From Podarcis liolepis (taxonomy: Eukaryota): a stretch of DNA of 64,000 nt. The stretch lies in NCBI GenBank assembly GCA_965112155.1, contig OZ218112.1, one strand, 5' to 3'. Below are positions 12,427 to 58,412 of the stretch, piece by piece (the first letter of the stretch is position 1; each line of letters opens with the position of its first letter). A program made the position numbers and the translations under genes. The notes beneath the pieces were generated by a model. That model was not told the DNA's origin. It saw only the letters and a list, made by a program, of their open reading frames with translations, and did not search any database.

Positions 12427-12648
12427 CCGTATTTTTCGCTATAAGAAGCACCAGACCACAAGACACACCTAGTTTTTGGAGGAGGAAAACAAGAAAAAAA
12501 AATATTCTGAATTTCAGAAGCCAGAACAGCAAGAGGGATTGCTGTGCAGTGATAGCTGCGCAGCCTGCATTTGCTGCATAAGATGCACACACATTTCCCC
12601 TTACTTTTTAGGAGGGAAAAAGTGACTCTTATACAGCAAAAAATATGG
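12427..12648. mobile_element. Tc1/mariner MITE family A, second copy
   Basis: TA-[ccgtatttttcgctataaga ... tcttatacagcaaaaaatatgg]-TA. Inverted relative to 1279-1536 and lacks one arm of the internal palindrome. Confidence 0.88.
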
Positions 12649-13806: not shown

Positions 13807-14106
13807 CCTTGATGAGATCCTCAACATATAAATTCCCCATAATCTAGATAGCCAGGCCATAAGCAAAGAGCAGAAATGAGCAATATCCCACTGTGAATCC
13901 AAAGCTTTTGGAACCAATGTACTGCATATATTGCAGCTTCCCCGTTGCCATCCTCTGCTCCTACCCCCACTGCCACATCACATCAAATTCTAGATTGTAA
14001 TCTCCACGGAAGCTGGGAGCTGTGCTTTTTGTATTCTGTAAAGCAACATGTACGCTGAGGCACTGTATAAGAAAATAAACACATAAATAATATTTTTGTA
14101 GGGATA

Positions 14107-14456
14107 AAAGGTAAAGGGACCCTGACCATTAGGTCCAGTCGTGACTGACTCTGGGGTTGCGGTGCTCATCTCACTTTATTGGCCGAGGGAGCCGGCGTAC
14201 AGCTTCCGGGTCATGTGGCCAACATGACTAAGCCGCTTCTGGCAAACCAGAGCAGTGCACGGAAGAGCTGTTTACTTTCCCACCAGAGTGGTACCTATTT
14301 ATCCACTTGCACTTTGACGTGCTTTTGAACTGCTAGGTTGGCAGGAGCAGGGACCGAGCAACGGGAGCTCACCCCTTCGTGGGGATTCGAACTGCCGACC
14401 TTCTGATCGGCACGTCCTAGGCTCTGTGGTTTAACCCACAGCGTCACCTGCGTCCC
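14107..14456 (-). mobile_element. Sauria SINE (Squam1-type), full length
   Basis: tRNA-like head with B-box (agttcgaatcc on the minus strand), (ACCTTT)n tail, 13-bp TSD ttttgtagggata. Confidence 0.93.
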
Positions 14457-14989
14457 TTTTGTAGGGATATTGAGATTTAAATGTTCAAGAAGGCTAGCCA
14501 CTTGATAAGACTCTAGTCCTTGATTTGATTGGGAGACACTGTGGCAGCTAAGTAAGTTTGAAACTACTTTAAATGGGTTGCACAGGCATCCCTGCACAAT
14601 GAATAGATCAGATGACTCAAGCAAGCAAAGCCACCATGGGCCTACTCACTCAACTTACTTAGCACAGCTGCCAATCAATTTGAGTTATCTGCAATAAAGT
14701 TTTAATTACCAGCCTCAGATGCAGTAAGCTGTTGGAGTCTCTGGACCCCTCCTCTGGATCTCACTGAAATAAATGTTTCTGCCTTATCCAGTACCTTTCC
14801 TTTCCCCATTTTTCATTGCATGAACCTGCTGTAGATATCTGCAATGAAACAAAGAATATGGTGGCTCTGATTGATACTGTATTCTTGTTTTTTGCCAATG
14901 AAGTTATGCCTTCATGACAGAGTTCATGCAATTATTTCAATATGGCTATAGGGTTGGAATGGGGTTTTGAATGTTGAGGACATTGAAAT

Positions 14990-18056: not shown

Positions 18057-18159
18057 ACAAACAGCAATACTCTTGGAATGTATACCTAATGCTTTTCCTA
18101 CTACAAAATAAAAAAATTCCTTCTAGTAGCACCTTAAAGACCAACTAAGTTAGTTCTTG

Positions 18160-18197
18160 GTATGAGCTTTCGTGTGCATGCACACTTCTTCAGATAC
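18160..18197 (-). ncRNA. Minimal type-I hammerhead ribozyme (Penelope pLTR)
   Basis: Minus strand reads GUAU-CUGAAGA-A-GUGUGCAUGCACAC-GAAA-GC-UC-AUAC: stem I GUAU/AUAC, CUGANGA core, palindromic stem II, GAAA, self-complementary AGCU stem III, cleavage triplet CUC. Confidence 0.85.
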
Positions 18198-21319: not shown

Positions 21320-21519
21320 NNNNNNNNNNNNNNNNNNNNNNNNNNNNNNNNNNNNNNNNNNNNNNNNNNNNNNNNNNNNNNNNNNNNNNNNNNNNNNNNN
21401 NNNNNNNNNNNNNNNNNNNNNNNNNNNNNNNNNNNNNNNNNNNNNNNNNNNNNNNNNNNNNNNNNNNNNNNNNNNNNNNNNNNNNNNNNNNNNNNNNNNN
21501 NNNNNNNNNNNNNNNNNNN
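21320..21519. other. Assembly gap (200 N)
   Basis: Run of N. Confidence 0.99.
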
Positions 21520-31546: not shown

Positions 31547-31895
31547 GGGACGTGGGTGGCACTGTGGGTTAAACCACAGAACCTAGGACTTGCCGATCAG
31601 AAGGTCAGCGGTTCGAATCCCCGCGACGGGGTGAGCTCCCGTTGCTCGGTCCCTGCTCCTGCCCACCTAGCAGTTTGAAAGCACATCAAAGTGCAAGTAG
31701 ATAAATAGGTACCGCTCCAGCAGGAAGGTAAACGGTGTTTCTGTGCACTGCTCTGGTTCGCCAGAAGTGGCTTAGTCATGCTGGCCACATGACCCAGAAG
31801 CTGTACGCCGGCTCCATCGGCCAATAAAGCGAGATGAGCGTCGCAACCCCAGAGTTGGCCATGACTGGACCTAATAGTCAGGGGTCCCTTTACTT
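31547..31895 (+). mobile_element. Sauria SINE, full length
   Basis: gggacgtgggtggc head, ggttcgaatcc B-box, TSD tacctactcaagat. Confidence 0.93.
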
Positions 31896-32162
31896 TACCT
31901 ACTCAAGATGTAAACTCCATTGAGTTCAAAGGGACTTACTCCCAAATGAAGACTGCAGCCTGATTAACCCACAAGCCTAAAATGGGGGTGGGGGTGGCAC
32001 TCATCTCCAAGTATTGACCAGTACCCCCTCCTTTTTAGGCATGTGAATATTTCAGATTGCAATCCAATCACACTTCCTAAGGGAACTGAGCTGTGTGAAA
32101 CCCACATCCAAATCATAATACTACTTTTCATTCAGATATATATTTTTTAAAATATATAAAAA

Positions 32163-32208
<46 letters not shown>

Positions 32209-33055
32209 GGCTTTCTTCTTTGTTCTGCTTGTTATTTAGGGCTGTGCTGATGGACGTTCTGAAACCAGCCGTGAAGGTTTTGACGGGGCAGCAGTGAAAA
32301 TTATGTTTCCTTTTGATCCATTATTTTTGCTTCTGTTTATATATATTTCTTTATGGGAAACCCACAACACATTTTCCAGCGAAATGCACACGTACAGTCT
32401 CAGGAGCCCAGAGTACCATTTAACTGTCATTTCCTTTGATTAACCTTCACCTGATCCTAATCCCACTCCCTTAGGCAATTTCCCTTCCCTTTGTCCTGCC
32501 ATTTAAATACCACTCTCTAGCAGGTGGGCCTATCTGTCATTAGAGGCCTGCCTATGTAATCTATATGTGTATTTTTGGATGCCACAATGCCAGCTTAGCT
32601 ACTGCGAGGCAAACAGGGAGCTGCTGTTGGCTAGTGTTATAATCGCAAAGGGGTGTTTGCAACACATTGAGAGGCGATTCAAACTGGAGGAAGGAATATA
32701 GTATAGTCCTCTCCTAGGCTTGTACTGTCTCAGAACCCACATGGATAGCAGTCTTTATATGAGGGCACATTGCCAACATTTCCCCACATATGGAAGGCTT
32801 GTGTGACTGGGGTGGGGGACAGAATCTGGGCCTGAAGGTTTTTCAAACTTTACATTTCCCTGCATACATTTTGCTGTGGAAGAGACCTATTGAAAGATGA
32901 CAAAGCATGCCTTTTTGCTTGTTTGAATGAACCCTACGGAATTTGCTCTCAGCAGTTACCCTCTGATAAACTTTTGCTTCTAGAAAATAGCCTTTAGTTA
33001 GAGCCCAGGGGTGTGCATGATGTTGGATCCAGACAAGCAGCACATTTACTTGGAA

Positions 33056-33346
33056 GATCAGAAGGTTGGCGGCTCAAATCTCCCCGACGGGGTGAGCTCC
33101 CATTGTTCGGTCCCAGCTCCTGCCAACCTAGCAGTTTGAAAGCACGTCAAAGTACAAGTAGATAAATAGGTACCGCTCCAGCGGGAAGGTAAATGACGTT
33201 TCTGTGTGCTGCTCTGGTTTGCCAGAAACGGCTTAGTCATGCTGGCCACATGACCTGGAAACTCCCTAGGCCAATAAATTGAGATGAGCGCCGCAACCCC
33301 AGAGTCGGTCACGACTGGAACTAATGGTCAGGGGTCCCTTTACCTT
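33056..33346 (+). mobile_element. Sauria SINE, 5'-truncated with a small internal deletion
   Basis: Starts at gatcagaagg; lacks the gctgtacgccgg segment seen in the other copies. Confidence 0.9.
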
Positions 33347-34386
33347 AACCGCCACTATTATCAGTTGGGCTTACTCTCACATAGGTGTGCATCGAATTTC
33401 AGTCAAATAGGATTTAAAAATCAGTACAAATAATATGAAGTGGGGTAACAGTGTAAGATAAACCTTCAAATAATTACAATTACTTGTATCCAATCTAAGC
33501 TACATGCACTTAGGTCCATTGAATTCAATGACTAAGTTCACCATTGATTTCAATGGATCAGAAACACAAATAATTACTCTAGATGTAAGTATTTATTTTA
33601 ATTTCTAGATTGCACTGCTGCCATTCTTTCATTTGAAACATATTGCTTGTGTTGTGCTTTAAATGCTGTTATTCTGCTTGCATTGGTTTTTAGGTAAGAA
33701 ATCAATTTGATTTTTTAAAAAAAATGTTTTAAGTGTTTTAATTATCGTTATAATAGTTTAACGATTTAATTGTATATTGTTTGAACTCTGTGTGAATCAC
33801 CCAGAGGACTATGTTGATTGAGCAGTCAACAAATGTTCTAAATAATTTTGATTGTCAAGGTTCTTTGCCATATAGAGGGAGTTCATATTCTGATCTCTCC
33901 CAATTTGAAGTTAGCTCACATCACCAGTTTCCAAACTCATCCTTGGGAAGGTTCTCTGAAGAATTTAATTATTCAACACTGATATACAGATCAGTTTTCA
34001 AGTCACTGATCTATGCAAAATTATTTCAAATCCAGATCCTGAGAAGTGGATCACCATTTCAGGGCCTTTTGTGCTTTTGTGCATCCAGTAGGAAACAGAT
34101 GGGGAATTTGTTAATTTATAGGTTGACTTGTAGCTTGGGATGGAGGATAATTTCATTCAGTCTGGATTTCAAAGTCAAACCCATCTAATCCATAGTTCCC
34201 AGACTTTCATGTGTATAAAATTATCATTCAGATAGTGCACTTCTCCAAAATTTGTGATGCCATTTTTATTCAAACATGTGTGCATTGTAAGAGAAATGCA
34301 CACAATTTAGAGATGATGGGTGCACAAAAATATATATTTTATGGGGTAAATATTTTTTAGTGGAAGGTACATGCAAAATGAGTATA

Positions 34387-37766: not shown

Positions 37767-38622
37767 TGGGGTTAGGCTGCATGCCTGAGCCTCTTCCAAT
37801 TCTTGGATTCATCAATGATTCAATTGTTTGAATAGCCAGACTAGCTTCCTGGTGAGGTAAGGTAAAGGTAAAGGGACCGCTGACCATTAGGTCCAGTCGT
37901 GGCCGACTCTGGGGTTGCAGCGCTCATCTCGCTTCAGGCCGAGGGAGCCGGCGTACAGCTTCCAGGCCATGTGGCCAGCATGACTAAGCTACTTCTGGTG
38001 AACCAGAGCAGCGCACGGAAATGCCATTTACCTTCCCGCCGGAGCGGTACCTATTTATCTACTTGCACTTGGCCGTGCTTTCGAACTGCTAGGTTGGCAG
38101 GAGCAGGGACCAAACAACGGGAGCTCACCCCGTCGTGAGGATTCGAACCGCCAACCTTCTGATCAGCAAGCCCTAGGCTCTGTAGTTTAACCCACAGCAC
38201 CACCCGCATTCCTGGTGAGGTAATGGCCCCCTAAGTACAGGTTGTTAAGGTAACCAAAGGAAGGGGCTCTGTGCCAGAGGACAAATGGGTGGGCCCCCTT
38301 CCTTTACCTGGCTGTTGGTGAGAAGGACAAAGGCCAGACTTGTGTGGGAGAGCTAGAAGCAGGTGGTAGGCTGAAGTCTATGAGGGAGAGCCATGCTTGA
38401 TTTCTGTTGGAATCCAAGGCTGTGACTATGGGGGAAGCAACATCTTCTTGGCATGTTAATCCTGGGGGGGCCCTCCATCACAGCCTAAGTTTGTATAGAT
38501 GTGTAAATGACCCATATATCCTAAAGACTCCATTGTCCCTCATTCCCAGGAAACCAAAGTCTGGGTAAGTGCCTGGAACCCCGGTATCTCGCACTGCTTT
38601 GAGATTGGGGTGAGATGCAACA
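37767..38622 (+). mobile_element. LTR-like element split by a Sauria SINE
   Basis: Sequence on both sides of the SINE is collinear with 51591-51870 (aggctgcatg..., ggctctgtgccag..., gagctagaagcagg..., ggaatccaaggctgtg); ends ...caaca. Confidence 0.7.
37861..38210 (-). mobile_element. Sauria SINE, full length
   Basis: Consensus match; TSD ttcctggtgaggtaa. Confidence 0.93.
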
Positions 38623-39499: not shown

Positions 39500-40325
39500 T
39501 AATGTTAGTGAATTGTACAAAGCGTGTTCTCCTTCATGGAGAGCACGTGTTGCAGTGGGGGCCGCCAGGACACTCCAAAGTTGGGGGGCGGGCTGACTGA
39601 TCGTTGGCCACTGATGCGATTGGGGCTTCCCTTGTTGTTGGGAAGAAGATAATGTTGCCAATTTTTGATTGACAGCCAGAAATAGTAAAACCCCTTGCAT
39701 GAGGCTTCCTCTTTTCGCCCGTGCAGCGGATTGCCCGTCCCCCCACCCTATATTTAGGGTTGTTCGCATTGACCTTGCTATGGCTGTCATGGGGTCGTCT
39801 GCTCTTGGGGCAGGGGCCTGGTAGGAATTTTGTCCATCTGGCTGATTGGCTGGGGCCATTTGGTTTTTGCCTACTGCGTAGCAAATCGTCACAACTTGTA
39901 AGGTTCGCGGTTAGGCATTGGTTTATGGTTTGGTTGGTTGAGGGGCATGGATTGGCTGTGCCTGCCCCTCTAATGCTGCTGCTGCTGCAAGGGATTCCGT
40001 TAAAGAAATTGGGGGCTAACTATTGCTTGTCCACTCTGTCAAGGGGGCTCGGGCCATAGCAATGAGCTCCTGGTTGCATTTGGGGTGAGGGCAGGTTCCC
40101 TGCTCCGCGTAACCCCCAAGTGTATTCCCCCATTCTGACTTTTGCATCATGCGGAATGTCAGTCTGTCCCCCATGGTGGGGGCAGATAGTCGCAAGCAAT
40201 GCCTACGCAACCACTCACAAATTTGTATTTTAATAAAGTTGTGGCCAAAATTATGCCAAAAATCTTAAACAAAAACTTCTGTGTGATGTGTGAGTTATTG
40301 GGGTGGACCTGGGGACCTCGACACG
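39500..40325 (+). mobile_element. CpG-rich LTR-like unit, possibly DIRS/Ngaro-derived
   Basis: GC box, ATTGG, TATA-like ctatatttag (39748-39757), structured motif 39771-39898 and aataaagttgtggcc (40232); homologous architecture at 48470-49150 on the minus strand. Boundaries and class uncertain. Confidence 0.55.
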
Positions 40326-43300: not shown

Positions 43301-43523
43301 CCTAAAATATGTGGTTAAACACACACACACATTCTGATACTTCTTTGATCTGAGAACCATGCTGCAAAATTTGGAGAAGTGCAAAATCCAATGGATATTA
43401 CATTCTGTAAGGGATGGATGAATCCATCAGTTTCACTTTCTCTCCACTTCTCTTCTTCCCAATCTTAAGCTTGGTTCGTTGGTTTGCAAAAACAAAACAA
43501 AACAGCAACAACCCTGGAAAAAA

Positions 43524-43723
43524 TTAAAAAAATTCCTTCCAGTAGCACCTTAAAGACCAACTAAGTTAGTTCTTGGTATGAGCTTTCGTGTGCATGCACA
43601 CTTCTTCAGATACCATGCACACGAAAGCTCATACCAAGAACTAACTCAGTTGGTCTTTAAGGTGCTACTGGAAGGAATTTTTTTATTTTGACTATGGCAG
43701 ACCAACACGGCTACCTATCTGTA
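43524..43723. mobile_element. 200-bp Penelope pLTR fold-back (inverted) insertion
   Basis: 11-bp TSD cctggaaaaaa (43513-43523 / 43724-43734); about 72-bp inverted arms nearly identical to 18110-18197; ends in the PLE-type 3' terminus agaccaacacggctacc. Confidence 0.9.
43574..43615 (-). ncRNA. Minimal type-I hammerhead ribozyme (second copy)
   Basis: UGGUAU-CUGAAGA-A-GUGUGCAUGCACAC-GAAA-GC-UC-AUACCA, with a 6-bp stem I. Confidence 0.82.
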
Positions 43724-44428: not shown

Positions 44429-44598
44429 NNNNNNNNNNNNNNNNNNNNNNNNNNNNNNNNNNNNNNNNNNNNNNNNNNNNNNNNNNNNNNNNNNNNNNNN
44501 NNNNNNNNNNNNNNNNNNNNNNNNNNNNNNNNNNNNNNNNNNNNNNNNNNNNNNNNNNNNNNNNNNNNNNNNNNNNNNNNNNNNNNNNNNNNNNNNNN
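44429..44598. other. Assembly gap (170 N)
   Basis: Run of N. Confidence 0.99.
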
Positions 44599-45982: not shown

Positions 45983-48469
45983 GTTGGGAAAACCCTGTTT
46001 CCTTAAAAGGGGGAAAAGCAAAGTCTTTACCATTGACCAATCTTTTCCAATGCGGCAAAGTATAGATTTTTTTGAGCTTCAACTCCCATTCAACATGGCC
46101 AATAGTCAGGGTGATGGGAGTTGTGGTCCAACAATGTCTGGTGGACAGCAAGTTGGGGAAGTCTGCTATAGATGTTTTTGAATGTTGTTATGACTACATT
46201 TTAAATTGTTTTAGCCACCCTTTCATAATTGCACATTGTTTTCTGGTAACCATATTTAATTGTTTTCCCCCCCTTTTCCTCCCCCCTTTTACACAGAAAA
46301 GCAGCTTTTCCTGCCTAGATTCTGTGCACACCCCTAATTAAAACTACTATGAAGGTGCCTGCATCAGTCAGCAAAACCAGGCAGAGAACATTATGGAGTG
46401 AAAATTAAAGAAGGAAAACATCAGAGAGTCTACTGTATATGCCTGCTGTTAGACACTCAAGCATGGAGAACAGGATACACTTCCATGGATGGATAGCTTT
46501 CCTTATTAAAAAAACCCAGTAGGACGCACAGTAGGGGAACATACTAAAACAAGGCTTTGTAGTAATTTCCTTGAAAGAAATTTCCCAAGATAGCAAGTTG
46601 AAAAGCTTTTAATCTTACAGCTGGCTTAAGGAGGGAGTTTTGCTGTAGGTGGTATAAAGACAGACCATTTGATTACAGCTGATCAGGTAGAGTTGGTCCA
46701 ACAATCCAGACACTTTTGTTCCCCCAAGGGACTTTGAATTTCCACTAATGAAAAAAAAAAAAAGGTTGAAAAACTTTTGTCTGAAATTTCCAGTATCTTT
46801 AAGGACATGAGAATATTTGGGGGTTGGAGGGAGATGTTCTTATTTCAGTTTTTGTTAATAATAAAAAAAAACCATGTTAAGCGCCAGATGAAAAATCTCT
46901 TTGCAAGATGACAGACAGCTATGGTAGTGTTTGCTTCCTTTCTAGACTTTTAACTCATTCCTTGGATGACCTAGATGTTTCTGCAGGTGAACGTGAAAGA
47001 CAATGTCATGTCATTTCTGCTGTCATTCCGAACTTCCGATTTCCTCCCGAATAATGGCGCTATAAATAGCACCCTCTTAGCAATGTAAGCTGCCCAATTT
47101 AACCATCCCCGTTTTGAAAAGGGGATTGAAAAGACTTCCTGTGAATATTTGCCAATTCAAAGAGAATGACTTGGATAGCGCACCCTGTATTATTACCATA
47201 GACTGCCCTATATTATTACTCATATTCCTGCCCGTAAACTTTGTTTGAGGACTGCTAGCCAATTCAGTCATTAGCCTTTGCCTAAATTCCAAATATGAAA
47301 AGAAAAAAAGGAAACCATGAACCAGAATTATTTGTGTTTTAGGCCACTGGTAGATTGAAACAAGCTGTATGGTGGTGGTGGCGGAACAGAATGGGAGGCT
47401 AAACAGATGGGTTTGTATCTAATGAAGTTGAAGTCACTTAGCAGTGGACTTGTCAAACTAGTGAAAAATTTAGTGCTGCTGGAACATTATTGTGCAAAAG
47501 AACATAAAATCAAACTGGTGGTAACTTTGTTGTGGAATAGATTGCACAATTTGTTGTGCTGTGCGTTTCTGCTAGCACAACTGTTATGTTGAATTCCTGT
47601 TGTGCAACATTAAGACTCACCCCTCCATTAGCTCAAGAGCCCTTGTGCTAGTGGACAAAGAATGTTGGGTACAGCCCATGATGTAGCTGAGCCCCATTTG
47701 TGCTCTTCTCTAAGCACAACTAACAGGAGTTCCTGCCTTTGGTATATGAAATCGGATAGACAACTGAGAAAGGGACTGACAGCAGTATAGCAAGACACAG
47801 TAGTGGGATGAAGTTCAGTTTTAGCCTGTGACTAGAACAGCTGTGGGAAAGGATATTGTAGACCCGGGAAAGGTTCAGAAAATGGAATTAAAAATAATCA
47901 AATAATTGGGGTAACTCATCTATGACAAATGGTTGCAACATTTGGGGCTTTTTCATTTGGAAAACAGGAATATTTGCCTACAGACCTGTTTCTCAATTCT
48001 GCCCCCTGCTGTGGACCCTCGAAAGGCCTTATAAGGCTCACATGGGCTGGAAGTGCCCTAGAGTGATGCTATTCCAGGGGTACTTGTGGGGGGTTGGATA
48101 GTTAAAATGTGAGCCACCTGGCACCAATCAGAGGAGTACTGTGGTTAGGTGAGCCAACCGGAGCATCCACTGGCATGGAAGCAGTTCCAATGTCAAGGTG
48201 TCCATCAAATTTGGAGCTCTAGCCCTGATCCCTAGTTCCACTCAGAGCTGGAAATAAAGGAGAACAGGCTTTGCTACTCCAGTATCTGATAACTCTGCAG
48301 TAAAGTGAACCTGAAGGAAAATTTGAGCAACAGAAACATAATTGTTAAGTTATCGTGCCCTCTCTTCCCATTCTTCTCCCACCTCATTTTCTCTGACTTC
48401 CAATAGAAGTTTGCACCTCTGTTTTCTGTCACATGATGCCTGTAGTACAGTGAGGGGCAAACCACAGAA

Positions 48470-49150
48470 ATTTGTGTTGAAGTAGACCACATTTTTATTG
48501 TTTACAGATGTACAGATGGCCAAGGCATTGGGAATGTATCTGGCATCAAGCAGCCCACCTGCTGGTTGATGAATAAGGTGCAGTTGACTCAGAGCAGGGG
48601 AGTCACCCCTGACATGGACTAGGTGCTATGATCCCACTTGCGTCACCATTGGGAGATGTGCTGTGGTCCATCACCCCCTGTGTGGACCCCCAGAGACACC
48701 CTTCCTGGACCCCTTTAACCTGACCAGCTAAGGATCCAACCCAATGGCTTATCCACCCAAATTGTGACTGTTACTATGAGGTAGGTGAAAAACTGCAGAC
48801 TGGCCAATTCGTCTGCAGGAAAAAAATTCCTCCCTGGCCCTGAATACAGCCACTGAATAACCATAGCAAGGTCCTGTTGACCTGCGTGCTCACCTTCAGG
48901 CTGACCAATTACAGCCTAGGTGGGTGAGTGGTGAATCTAACAAATGAGGGCAAACTACACCAGGCTGACCTTTTAAATACTACAGGGGCGGGCCTGGTTC
49001 AGCCTCCTCCCCTGCAACTTGATTGGCCCATTCAACCAGATCATCCCCATCAGGCCAGCACAGCCAGAGGGGGAGGCACTAGACATCCCCTCCATTGTGT
49101 GGGAAGGAGCTAGCCCCTGGGACCAGGCTGTAGCCGTGCCACACCACACC
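48470..49150 (-). mobile_element. LTR-like unit related to 39500-40325 (DIRS/Ngaro-like?)
   Basis: Minus strand order: CCAAT, GC box, tatttaaaa, structured motif 48758-48873, gttaaag, then caataaaaatgtggtc. Confidence 0.55.
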
Positions 49151-49913
49151 AAACAGCAAATGCTGCTCCCCTGGAGTCCCAGGTGAGAAGATATTTCTGC
49201 ATTTAGAGCTGAATAACCTATAATAGCAACACATGAAAAAAAATGCTAATCAGCCCAATTTCTTGCTTAGGCATGAGCTCTGTTGCTATTGTATATAAAT
49301 ATGTTAGAAATCAGTTGGAAAGGGTTTAAATTACAGTCCCCTTGGCACAGGACTTCTAGGTCATGTTTTGCCCAATACGATGAGGTACCAGTGGTGGCCT
49401 GATTCAGTTCAAGCTACGTTCATGAGACCTGAGAGTGTTTTCAGCACCTTGTAAACCTGACTAACCCAGAGCTGAGAAACACTCTCCGTGTCCTGAATAT
49501 CTCATGTCGGCCACCAAGGGCTGAGAACAGGAAACAAACACGCTTTATAATGCGTTTCACATTGAAATAATTAAAGAGAATTGTTGCTGGAGGGAAACGT
49601 GTCTTTAAAAATTAACCCTGATTTTTTCACTGACACATTTCATTTACTTAGAGCGGTCCTTGGCATTTCCCTCCCCTCCCCTCCCCAATAGAACAAGCTT
49701 AACATTGGCTGAAAAGGGAAATCAGGGAGTGGGGTGCGAAAGAGAAAAGAAAACTTGGGATCAGGAGGAATAGAAAATCCATTCCTACAATTCTTACTCG
49801 CTCAAGCAGTTCTTATGAGGACTGTGCTTGTGACTTTGGATAAGAGGCTTAAAACTGAGTTAAGAACCCAAATTCGCAAAATAACAACTTTAAGGATTCA
49901 TATCCCTTTCCTG

Positions 49914-50272
49914 GGGACGCAGGTGGGGCTGTGGGTAAAAGCCTCGGCGCCTAGGACTTACTGATCAAAAGGTCGGCGGTTCGAATCCCTGCGGCAGGGT
50001 GCGCTCCCGTCGCTCGGTCCCAGCCCCTGCCAACCTAGCAGTTCGAAAGCACCCCCGGGTGCAAGTAGATAAATAGGGACCGCTTACTAGCGGGAAGGTA
50101 AACGGCGTTCCGTGTGCTGCGCTGGCTCGCCAGATGCAGCTTTGTCACGCTGGCCACGTGACCCGGAAGTGTCTGCGGACAGTGCTGGCTCCCGGCCTCT
50201 AGAGTGATATGAGCGCACAACCCTAGAGTCTGTCAAGACTGGCCCGTACGGGCAGGGGTACCTTTACCTTTT
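49914..50272 (+). mobile_element. Sauria SINE, divergent subfamily
   Basis: Same architecture with many diagnostic differences (aaagcacccccggg, gtgtctgcggacag, ggcccgtacgggcaggggta); 13-bp TSD tatccctttcctg. Confidence 0.9.
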
Positions 50273-50576
50273 TATCCCTTTCCTGCTGCATCCCTGGGGG
50301 CTCCAAACTTTCAAAGTGTTATGGAAGTAAGTAGAGCTGTATAGTAGATTTGACAAGGGCCTGAATCCAGGGCCAGATAAGACCTTTTCAGAGGGATCTG
50401 GGCATTATTCGACTTGGGTTGAGAGAGCCCCAGATCACTATAGGTTGGGCTGAGCAACCCAGAGACATACAGGGCTGTCAGGGGAAGGGCATTAGGCAGG
50501 AAGGAGAGGTAGGCATGAGCAAGAAGAATGGGGAAGCTGTGAAAAGTTTCTGGGTGGCTGCATGTTTGTGGGAGAA

Positions 50577-51222
50577 GGTAAAGGTAAAGGTAAAGGTAAA
50601 GGGACCCTGACCATTAGGTCCAGTCGTGGCTGACTCTGGGGTTGCGGCGCTCATCTCGCTTTATTGGCCGAGGGAGCCGGCGTACAGCTTCCGGGTCATG
50701 TGGCCAGCAAGACAAAGCCACTTCTGGCGAACCAGAGCAGCACATGGAAACGCTGTTTACCTTCCCGCCGGAGCGGTACCTACAGTGGTGCCTCGCAAGA
50801 CGAAATTAATCCGTTCCGTGGGTCTCTTCGTCTTGCGGTTTTTTCGTCTTGCGAAGCACGGCTATTAGCGGCTTAGCGGCTATTAACGGCTTAGCGGCTT
50901 TAAGAAAAAGGAAACAAACTTGCAAGAACTCGCAAGACGTTTCATCTTGCGAAGCAAGCCCATAAGGAAATTCATCTTGCGGAACGACTCAAAAAACGGA
51001 AAACTCTTTCGTCTTGCGCGTTTTTCGACTTGCGAGGCATTCGTCTTGCGAGGTACCACTGTATTTATCTACTTGCACTTTGAGGTGCTTTCAAACTGCT
51101 AGGTTGGCAGGAGCTGGGACCAAGCAACGGGAGCTCACCCCGTCGCAGGGATTTGAACTGCTGACCTTCTGATCAGCAAGTCCTAGGCTCTGTGGTTTAA
51201 CCCACAGCGCCACCCACGTCCC
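50577..51222 (-). mobile_element. Sauria SINE interrupted by MITE family B
   Basis: TSD gtgggagaa; consensus ggtaccTAtttatct is split by the MITE. Confidence 0.93.
50783..51061. mobile_element. Tigger/pogo-like MITE family B, nested copy
   Basis: TA-[cagtggtgcctcgcaagacgaa ... ttcgtcttgcgaggtaccactg]-TA. Confidence 0.93.
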
Positions 51223-51590
51223 GTGGGAGAAAGTAGAGAGACACATTTCCTGTCCTCCTTCCCCAAAGCAGTGCTACATAGGATCAGAATCTCCAACATA
51301 ACAGCTGAAGGATCTGAATCTGTGCATGCAAGAGATTTCCCTTGCATGCAGGGGATCCACTCATGAAAGAGCAGCGCCATGCAAGTTTGGATCCTTCTAC
51401 TAAACAGCAGTTAAGCCAGAGGATCCAGTCTTGCACAGTGCCAGTTGCTGCTCCTTTGTAAGCGGCAATATGAAGGATCAGATTCTCTCATGGATACAAT
51501 CTTCAGTGGCTCCATACAGGATCAAATTCTCCCATATTTTTAAAGGCTATTTTTATGGTACTTTTTGTGAGTTGGGTGTGTGTGTGTGTG

Positions 51591-51925: not shown

Positions 51926-52280
51926 GGGACGTGGGTGGCGCTGTGGGTTAAAGCACAGAGCCTAGGACTTGCCAATTATAAGGTCGGCAGTTCGAATCCC
52001 CACGATGGGGTGAGCTCCCGTTGCTCAGTCCCTGCTCCTGCCAACCTAGCAGTTCAAAAGCACATCAAAGTGCAAGTAGATAAATAGGTACCGCTCCGGC
52101 AGGAAGGTAAATGGCGTTTCCATGCGCTGCTCTGGTTCGCCAGAAGCAGCTTAGTCATGCTGGCCACATGACCCGGAAGCTGTACGCCGGCTCCCTTGGC
52201 CAATAAAGCAAGATGAGCACCGCAACCCCAGAGTCGGCCACGACTGGACCTGATGGTCAGGGGTCCCTTTACCTTTACCT
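51926..52280 (+). mobile_element. Sauria SINE, full length
   Basis: Consensus match; TSD tactttccaca. Confidence 0.93.
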
Positions 52281-57566: not shown

Positions 57567-57917
57567 GGGACACAGGTGGCGCTGTGGGTTAAACCACAGA
57601 GCCTAGGACTTGCCGATCAGAAGGTTGGTGGTTCGAATCCCCGTGACAGGGTGAGCTCCCATTGCTCGGTCCCTGCTCCTGCCAACCCAGCAGTTCAAAA
57701 GCACGTCAAAGTGCAAGTAGATAAATAGATACCACTCCGGCGGGAAGGTAAACGGTGTTTCCGTGTGCTGCTTTGGTTCGCCAGAGGCGGCTTAGTCATG
57801 GTGGCCACATGACCCGGAAGCTGTACGCTGGCTCCCTCGGCCAATAAAGCGAGATGAGTGATGCAACCCCAGAGTCGGTCACGACTGGACCTAATGGTCA
57901 GGTGTCCCTTTACCTTT
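57567..57917 (+). mobile_element. Sauria SINE, full length
   Basis: Consensus match from head to tail. Confidence 0.92.
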
Positions 57918-58412
57918 TATGTAGCTGCATAGATATAGTTAGATATGGATTGTGCTAAATAGCCGACTCATGGTATCCATGGTAATGAAGCCACAATAAC
58001 TGAATCGAGCCTCCAGTTTCAGAGGCAGTAGGCCACTGGATAGTGGGCTACTGCCTTCATGTCCTGCTTGCAGGCTTCCCAGAGGCATCTGATTCGTTGC
58101 ATGGAGAAACAGGATGCTAGACTTGATAGAACTTTGGTCTGGGTGAAGAGGAAGGTTCTGATGTTCTAATTAAGGACAAAACTAGTTAATAGGTGACCAG
58201 TCTGCTGTCACCAATCTGCTTTTCTTCCCCGCACCCCCTGGTAACATCTTGTTGAAGCAGATGAGTGGTGTGATACCATCACGTTCAATGAACCCTTGCC
58301 ATGTAGTTGGCTGCTGCACATGGCAAAACCCTGACTGTTATAATGCCACAAGTGGGTCCTTCATGGGTCCTTGAAGCATGTGGAGTGCTCCCTCTTCAGC
58401 ACCTCAGTTACT

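Follow-up and report, generated by a model that had tools for sequence, protein, structure and literature searches.

Comparison of two diverged copies identifies the 116-nt motif on the minus strand at 48758-48873 of the 64,000-nt stretch of DNA analysed here (the window) as a three-way-junction RNA domain, the helices of which were held by selection through the divergence of two subfamilies. The motif is best explained as a structured RNA domain that forms the 5' terminus of an interspersed element of low copy number, of which the unit described here as copy B is one member and which is probably a retroelement. The long arm of the domain has the outward form of an ENE, the class of RNA structure that clamps a poly(A) tail in a triple helix. 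The firm result is narrower than such a function and consists of a fold under selection that forms part of a transposed unit, with the clamping of a tail put forward as a hypothesis.

The motif is built from a helix, P1, that encloses a small hairpin and a long arm. In copy B all three lie on the minus strand, where P1 pairs UUGCUAUG (48869-48862) with CAUAGUAA (48778-48771) over 8 bp, one of which is a G-U pair, and the small hairpin (48852-48835) has a 5-bp stem, UGGCU/GGCCA. The long arm (48780-48834) is 55 nt in length and is composed of a lower stem, a U-rich internal loop, an upper stem and an apical loop, which read from 5' to 3' as GGGAGG, AAUUUUUUUC, CUGCAGAC, the loop GAAUUGGCCA, GUCUGCAG, UUUUUCA and CCUACC. 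The lower stem, GGGAGG/CCUACC, has a G.A mismatch at its third pair, and the upper stem, CUGCAGAC/GUCUGCAG, extends for 8 bp (48818-48811 with 48800-48793). Between the two stems the internal loop contains a tract of seven U residues on its 5' side (48820-48826) and of five on its 3' side (48788-48792). All of these strings are present at 48873-48758 as the initial annotation had quoted them, and the arrangement that it had taken as the defining ENE topology, a stem, a loop that is U-rich on both sides and then a second stem, is seen in both copies of the motif.

Folded on its own, the copy B 116-mer has a minimum free energy (MFE) of -36.4 kcal/mol (z -3.1), a value that none of 200 shuffles equalled. 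The MFE structure adopts a different register, GGAGGAA being paired there with the 3' U tract, and the open-loop fold of the initial annotation lies 7.7 kcal/mol above it.

A low-stringency blastn search of the window returned a single significant match to copy B, termed copy A (63.6% over 129 nt, E 7e-4), and blastn together with a repeat search found no close copy of B in the window. Copy A of the motif (39771-39898, plus strand) belongs to a diverged subfamily and is 64% identical to copy B. With a covariance model (CM) built from the two copies, A scores 147.6 bits and B 123.5 bits, and the model finds no third copy in the 64-kb window, where the next score is 9.7 bits against 123-148 for the pair. 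The flanks of the two copies are hardly alignable, and their global alignment gives only islands of similarity that continue as far as a common AATAAA-NN-TGTGGYC; the AATAAA downstream of copy A lies at 40232-40237 (plus strand) and is followed by TGTGGCC, as in copy B. The long arm of copy A (39820-39875, plus strand) has a lower stem GGUAGG/CCUACU, a 5' loop AAUUUUGU and a 3' loop UUUUUG, and its upper stem is interrupted by a 2x2 internal loop. The MFE fold of copy A is exactly the model of the initial annotation.

How well has the fold survived the separation of the two copies? In a structure-blind MAFFT alignment, where 74 of the 116 aligned bases are identical, 94.3% of the cells are paired under the model, and when the partners are slid by 1-3 columns as a control the pairing falls to 31-48%. 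Substitutions have reached 36.5% of the paired bases and 35.9% of the unpaired bases, and 3 of the 26 pairs are broken in B. Changes on both sides affect four pairs, three of them within the 5-bp apical helix, and a further six pairs have one-sided changes that are compatible with wobble pairing. When an equal number of random substitutions is put into the paired columns of copy A, the simulated P for so few broken pairs ranges from 3.5e-5 (kappa 1) to 2.2e-3 (kappa 4). RNAalifold, applied to A and B together, independently gives the same three-way junction with a GAC/GUC extension of P1. The stems covary between A and B, and the U tracts and the AGGAA that precedes them remain fixed. The two strands also differ in their folding, with MFE values of -44.0 and -36.4 kcal/mol for the sense strand of copies A and B, respectively, versus -26.4 and -26.8 kcal/mol for the antisense. 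The sense strand is 10-18 kcal/mol stabler owing to its many G-U pairs, a sign that the RNA is made from this strand as annotated.

Covariation between copies was one of the checks that the initial annotation had proposed, and it is seen here as the four double changes, with a simulated P for the kept pairs of at most 2.2e-3, on the basis of two sequences together with summary read data from paralogs. The proposal of a structured RNA-type element on the minus strand is supported by helices that are kept despite 36% substitution, from the compensatory changes and from the strand asymmetry based on G-U pairs.

The extent of the repeat to which copy B belongs can be read from sequencing runs of related organisms. 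Runs of five such organisms contain the locus, and contigs from two of these were mapped on 48200-50300 at a likeness of at least 80%. The depth of single-copy contigs is about 10 in one (X3) and 7-9 in the other (X7). Depth reaches 150-330 at 48697-48909 and 140-190 at 48484-48625, with 30-45 between 48625 and 48697, where the paralogs diverge or have deletions, and it is at the single-copy level upstream (48910-49200) and below 48483. Two independent paralog contigs lose their likeness at 48874/48875, and the excess depth stops at around 48481-48482. From these edges and the duplication that adjoins them, the copy B repeat unit occupies 48481-48874 on the minus strand, a length of 394 nt, and begins with GGACCTTGC and ends with GGTCTACT. 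The hexamer TCAACA adjoins the depth-defined edge on both sides (48875-48880 upstream and 48475-48480 downstream, minus strand), and since it stands exactly at the edges, copy B can be described as a 394-nt insertion with a 6-bp target site duplication (TSD). The chance of the TCAACA duplication is 0.4% within +/-5 nt of the edge and 3.3% in a 91-nt zone. The unit contains an AATAAA (48499-48494, minus strand) that lies 13 nt from its 3' end with no A tail after it, and 259 nt past the motif, close to the distance of about 270 nt given in the initial annotation. The depth edges, the duplication and the AATAAA together bear out the view that the motif sits inside a transposed unit with its own polyadenylation signal. 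The CCAAT (49026-49022), GC box (48994-48985) and TATA-like TATTTAAA (48979-48972) of the minus strand, which had been noted with it, are indeed present upstream, but by their depth of 10-17 they lie in the single-copy flank outside the repeat and so do not constitute a promoter of the element.

The copy B family is a low-copy dispersed repeat, represented in the reads of two related species by at least 26 distinct contigs. At one site, up to 26 different contigs of a species agree on the same alternative letter, and the paralog pieces are 82-87% like copy B. A 3,990-nt contig of one related species (organism B) covers the entire copy B unit with about 1% divergence, so the insertion is old and is common to that organism, and shorter contigs from organism E match parts of the unit. 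As copy B is old, slightly decayed and common to relatives, any function would belong to the active ancestor of the family. No TSD was found around copy A. The sequence TATATTTA lies at 39749-39756, 14 nt upstream of the copy A motif, and may or may not be within the unit of A; at this spacing a TATA-directed start would land on the first bases of the conserved domain. Beyond these organisms, raw metagenomic reads (X21) contained no reads of the copy B unit, word searches of public assemblies with the open reading frames (ORFs) that overlap B and A were blank, and a scan of viral sequences with an exact pattern gave no match. Two metagenome contigs matched by the exact-pattern scan (L001 and L002) were set aside as AT-rich microbial chance matches and not homologues.

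The majority letters of the paralogs listed agree with the fold model, in that a wobble or mismatch of copy B becomes a Watson-Crick pair. For instance, among the matches listed, most paralogs have C at 48773 in place of the U of copy B, which makes this P1 pair G-C and not G-U. Most of these listed matches also have G in place of U at 48792, where it pairs with C 48819 to give a 9-bp upper stem and a 3' tract of U4. The remaining majority differences among the matches listed fall in the apical loop (48810) and the 3' tail (48761 and 48747), several of them being the letter of copy A. Insertions and deletions in the same matches are located in the apical loop, in the linker after P1 and in the U7 tract, which has one U less (U6) in a few paralogs.

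The label of LTR or DIRS-like element that had been attached to the unit is not borne out. What speaks for an LTR is the combination of defined ends with a TSD of 6 bp, within the LTR range of 4-6 bp, and a target duplication of this length is compatible with integrase-type or retroposon insertion. The TG...CA termini of an LTR were not found at the unit, which starts with GG (or AG) and ends with CT, and the AATAAA, at only 13 nt from the unit end, leaves no room for a U5 region. No second LTR was found in the 64 kb, where the CM recovers A and B alone, in convergent orientation and 64% alike, and no gag or pol was seen nearby, where the ORFs gave no Pfam domains. DIRS-like elements have inverted or split terminal repeats and a tyrosine recombinase, and insert without target duplication. 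Such an element is made unlikely by the TSD, by the lack of a recombinase or reverse transcriptase ORF, and by the divergence of A and B, which is too great for two ends of one element. A Pol III SINE, which should have internal A and B boxes and a sense strand free of T4+ runs, was rejected on account of the T7 and T5 runs within the first 90 nt and of the lack of any match to tRNA, 5S or 7SL, and a processed copy of L1 type is unlikely given that there is no A tail. A MITE with TTGCTATGG...CCATAGCAA as terminal inverted repeats would have to end at about 48612, and the repeat runs on to 48481 in paralog contigs. A CR1-like TTCTGTG tail that is common to A and B lies, by depth, outside the copy B unit.

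Several other repeats were recorded in the window. A SINE-like repeat of about 350 bp is present at 49914-50272, 31547-31900, 33008-33350, 51926-52279, 57567-57920, 14100-14458, 37863-38213 and 50581-51237; its summed contig depth in related species is 1e5-4e6, and a loose-end consensus upstream of truncated copies has a tRNA-like head with GGTTCGAATCC. At 46065-46138 there is a near-perfect palindromic hairpin that matches Rfam mir-5408 on both strands at 23.8 and 21.4 bits (gathering score 90), and which is probably a foldback or MITE-like repeat and not a called miRNA. A 93-nt direct repeat (18105-18197 and 43521-43613) is 98% identical, and an inverted repeat (1279-1482 and 12481-12648) has arms of 80-98 nt that are 79-95% complementary, with about 11 kb between them. 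Runs of N are found at 21320-21519 (200 nt) and 44429-44598 (170 nt).

What, then, might the conserved domain do? The hallmark of an ENE is a stem-loop in which a U-rich internal loop adjoins G-C pairs (PMC7583470), and neither the U tracts nor the G-C pairs that flank them are dispensable (PMC12501189). In the lizard arm the two tracts are U7 and U5 in copy B, U7 and U4 in the paralog majority, and UUUUGU and UUUUU in copy A, and they abut the upper stem in both copies. Both copies also have a C-G pair closing the upper stem and two invariant G-C pairs atop the lower stem. Against an ENE, spacers of 2 nt separate the lower stem from the U tracts, with AA on one side and CA (or G) on the other, and only about 4-5 triples are possible, or about four in copy A, the 5' tract of which is broken by a G, and in most of the family. 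The arm belongs to the 5' end of the unit and is 300-380 nt away from the poly(A) site, a distance that is not disqualifying since the ENE of Evade lies upstream of the entire 3' LTR (PMC12501189).

On this anatomy the most likely reading, though somewhat short of an even chance, is that the polyadenylated RNA of the element clamps its own tail in the long arm as U.A-U triples and that deadenylation is thereby slowed. The RNA would be made by RNA polymerase II and polyadenylated at the element's own AAUAAA, following which the long arm would act as an ENE, with its two U tracts clamping a stretch of poly(A) in U.A-U triples and the G-C pairs of the lower stem receiving A-minor contacts. The tail would in this way be shielded from deadenylases, allowing more element RNA to accumulate and giving the element a greater chance of being copied. 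The purine run GGAGGAA or GGUAGGAA may pair with the 3' U tract to form a closed state that poly(A) would displace. Such an alternative register, which competes with the open loop and counts against a clamp, is possible in both copies, and from inspection of the two sequences the change at G42, a broken pair in the annotated register, becomes compensated within it. A more elaborate model, in which a squamate element has a working single-domain ENE that is set in a three-way junction, gated by the purine run and provided with an apical loop that also acts as a CCAAT box in the DNA, must be regarded as doubtful.

Also weighing against tail clamping, no run on record as RNA contains the stretch. 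A small run of organism E, guessed to be RNA, has one 153-nt contig on 48694-48849 (depth 2.7, 4 mismatches and 7 gaps) and nothing on the single-copy flanks of copy B, which gives a weak hint that some member of the family is transcribed.

The strongest alternative to tail clamping is that the motif is a conserved structured RNA domain with some other job, an explanation that is tenable though on balance unlikely. It might be a platform for a U-binding protein, a signal for packaging or for recognition by reverse transcriptase, an element for nuclear export, or a U-rich enhancer that acts upstream on 3'-end processing. In that case the U tracts would bind protein or pair with the conserved purine run. 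A conserved fold of itself has no specific tie to poly(A), and the register in which GGAGGAA pairs with the 3' U tract, open to both copies, is the MFE structure of copy B. The position of the domain at the 5' end of the unit, several hundred nucleotides (300-380) from the poly(A) site, also favours another role. The same is true of a second conserved partner for the 5' strand of P1, the distal CAUAGCA (48624-48630, minus strand), which is conserved in copy A at 40053-40062 (GCCAUAGCAA). Complements of the P1 strand are thus found 170-290 nt downstream in both units, and in the MFE fold of full-length B the CAUAGCA, followed by a GUCC that pairs with a 5' GGAC, replaces P1. This distal partner suggests either that the domain can be closed over a long range in another way or that the motif is repeated at DNA level. 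We know of no other described motif with the two-sided U-tract anatomy. The placing of U tracts on both strands of the loop, where they abut G-C-closed stems, is the hallmark specific to ENEs (PMC7583470) and argues against a role unrelated to the tail, as does the presence in the element of its own AAUAAA.

Conservation could also have acted on the DNA, with the motif serving as an internal promoter or enhancer of 120 bp that has an NF-Y-type inverted CCAAT and repeated TTGCTATGG/CCATAGCAA, the RNA fold being incidental; this is improbable. It does account for the inverted CCAAT that forms part of the apical loop in both copies (ATTGG at 48808-48804, within GAAUUGGCCA of copy B, and at 39845-39849 in copy A), for a second CATTGG found 18-24 nt past the motif in both, and for the 8-9-mer TTGCTATGG, of which each unit has one forward copy and two complementary ones. 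An element that starts at its own 5' end would, moreover, require internal promoter signals. Protein-binding sites, however, predict neither the double changes in the helices nor the retention of 23 of 26 pairs at 36% substitution, and they do not explain the asymmetry of 10-18 kcal/mol that the G-U pairs create between the strands. Promoter and RNA roles are in any case not mutually exclusive.

There is only a slight probability that the two copies are decaying members of an old repeat that happen to fold alike, without any selected structure. The topology itself is not rare. A strict descriptor (lower stem 5 bp or longer, four or more U residues on each side of the loop, closing pairs of G-C and a contiguous upper stem 7 bp or longer) has the long arm of copy B as its sole match in the 64-kb window, yet matches by chance 0.17 times per shuffled 64 kb, with at least one match in 16% of dinucleotide shuffles. 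At this expectation the ENE-like shape alone is not above chance, and the motif exceeds chance only because it is conserved in copy A and belongs to a repeat family. Taken singly, copy A is no stabler than its shuffles (z -1.2), the stability of the units at full length is unremarkable (z -0.8 and -1.0), and the covariation comes from two sequences only. Against a chance resemblance stand the simulated P values for the retained pairs, the recovery of the same fold by RNAalifold, and the majority letters of the paralogs, which restore Watson-Crick pairs lost in copy B.

It is very improbable that the arm belongs to a MALAT1-like 3'-end module, composed of an ENE, an encoded A-rich tract and a tRNA-like RNA. 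The squamate genome and the ENE-like arm would suit such a module, many loci of this type having been reported from a lizard (Zhang et al. 2017, as cited in PMC12941219), but the module is contradicted by the lack of an A-rich tract after the arm and by searches with ARAGORN and Rfam around both copies, which gave no tRNA-like or mascRNA match, and there is a canonical AATAAA instead. A short coding exon, with ...GPGRNF... in one frame of both copies and the motif covered by ORFs of 49 aa in copy B and 112 aa in copy A, is the least probable explanation of all, for the gaps in the alignment (10, 1 and 1 nt) put the copies out of frame with each other and no frame is both open and similar in A and B, which means that the motif is not coding, and the ORFs have no Pfam domains and no relatives by word search.

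The reading of the arm as an ENE invites comparison with known systems. Like the ENE of KSHV PAN RNA, the lizard arm has a U-rich loop on two strands, tracts that abut a G-C-closed upper stem, and G-C pairs below. A canonical poly(A) signal is likewise present, the PAN ENE acting on a real tail and not on an encoded A tract. Unlike that ENE, the lizard arm forms a branch of a 5'-terminal three-way junction in a unit of about 0.4 kb, is 300-380 nt distant from its poly(A) site, and has AA and CA spacers, about 4-5 triples and a competing register, its clamp function being a prediction only. The arm has no sequence or covariance-model likeness to any Rfam family: Rfam 15, which does not necessarily include ENE models, gave no family match up to E 10, search spaces of 151-161 nt included. 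Matches to gut-2, mir-5408, Six3os1 and mir-564 were far under their thresholds and were rejected.

Plants, fungi and slime mold have transposable elements (TEs) whose RNAs contain ENEs, and further cases are predicted for retroviruses of stickleback (Tycowski et al. 2016, as cited in PMC7583470). In Arabidopsis, transposition of Evade/Copia93 is promoted by an ENE that lies upstream of the 3' LTR and protects the tail (PMC12501189). As far as these accounts describe the TE ENEs, the lizard arm is like them in being a stem-loop with a U-rich internal loop, in a mobile element that has its own polyadenylation signal, and in being conserved across diverged element copies, and like the Evade ENE it lies hundreds of nucleotides upstream of the tail (PMC12501189). 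It differs from most plant TE ENEs, described there as double-domain, in being single-domain and in having a squamate host, and from TE ENEs more widely in belonging to an element in which neither TG...CA ends nor a coding part is seen, the stickleback comparison being a second-hand one. MALAT1-like loci, or tancRNAs, are numerous in Anolis carolinensis (Zhang et al. 2017, as cited in PMC12941219) and resemble the lizard family in combining ENE-type U-rich structures with many copies in a lizard genome. By that account they are unlike it in their use of a blunt-ended triple helix, an encoded A-rich tract and an RNase P cut at a tRNA-like element. Full-text literature searches, the coverage of which did not extend to Tycowski et al. 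2016 and Zhang et al. 2017, returned no poly(A)-type ENE in a squamate repeat.

ENEs represent the best-understood route by which an RNA guards its own poly(A) tail. Those of TEs are documented mainly in plants and fungi, where one of them, that of Evade, has recently been shown to drive mobility (PMC12501189). For vertebrates, the literature reached, in part through secondary citation, contains only the predicted cases in stickleback retroviruses and the distinct modules of MALAT1 type. If the hypothesis proves true, the lizard arm would give amniotes their first case of a TE triple helix that clamps poly(A), extending the ENE strategy to amniote mobile elements and offering a compact vertebrate element of 55 nt for the testing of tail protection. 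Should the function hold, the family would add a new host group and an unusual setting, in which the arm is part of a 5'-terminal three-way junction of the unit and may possess a closed state.
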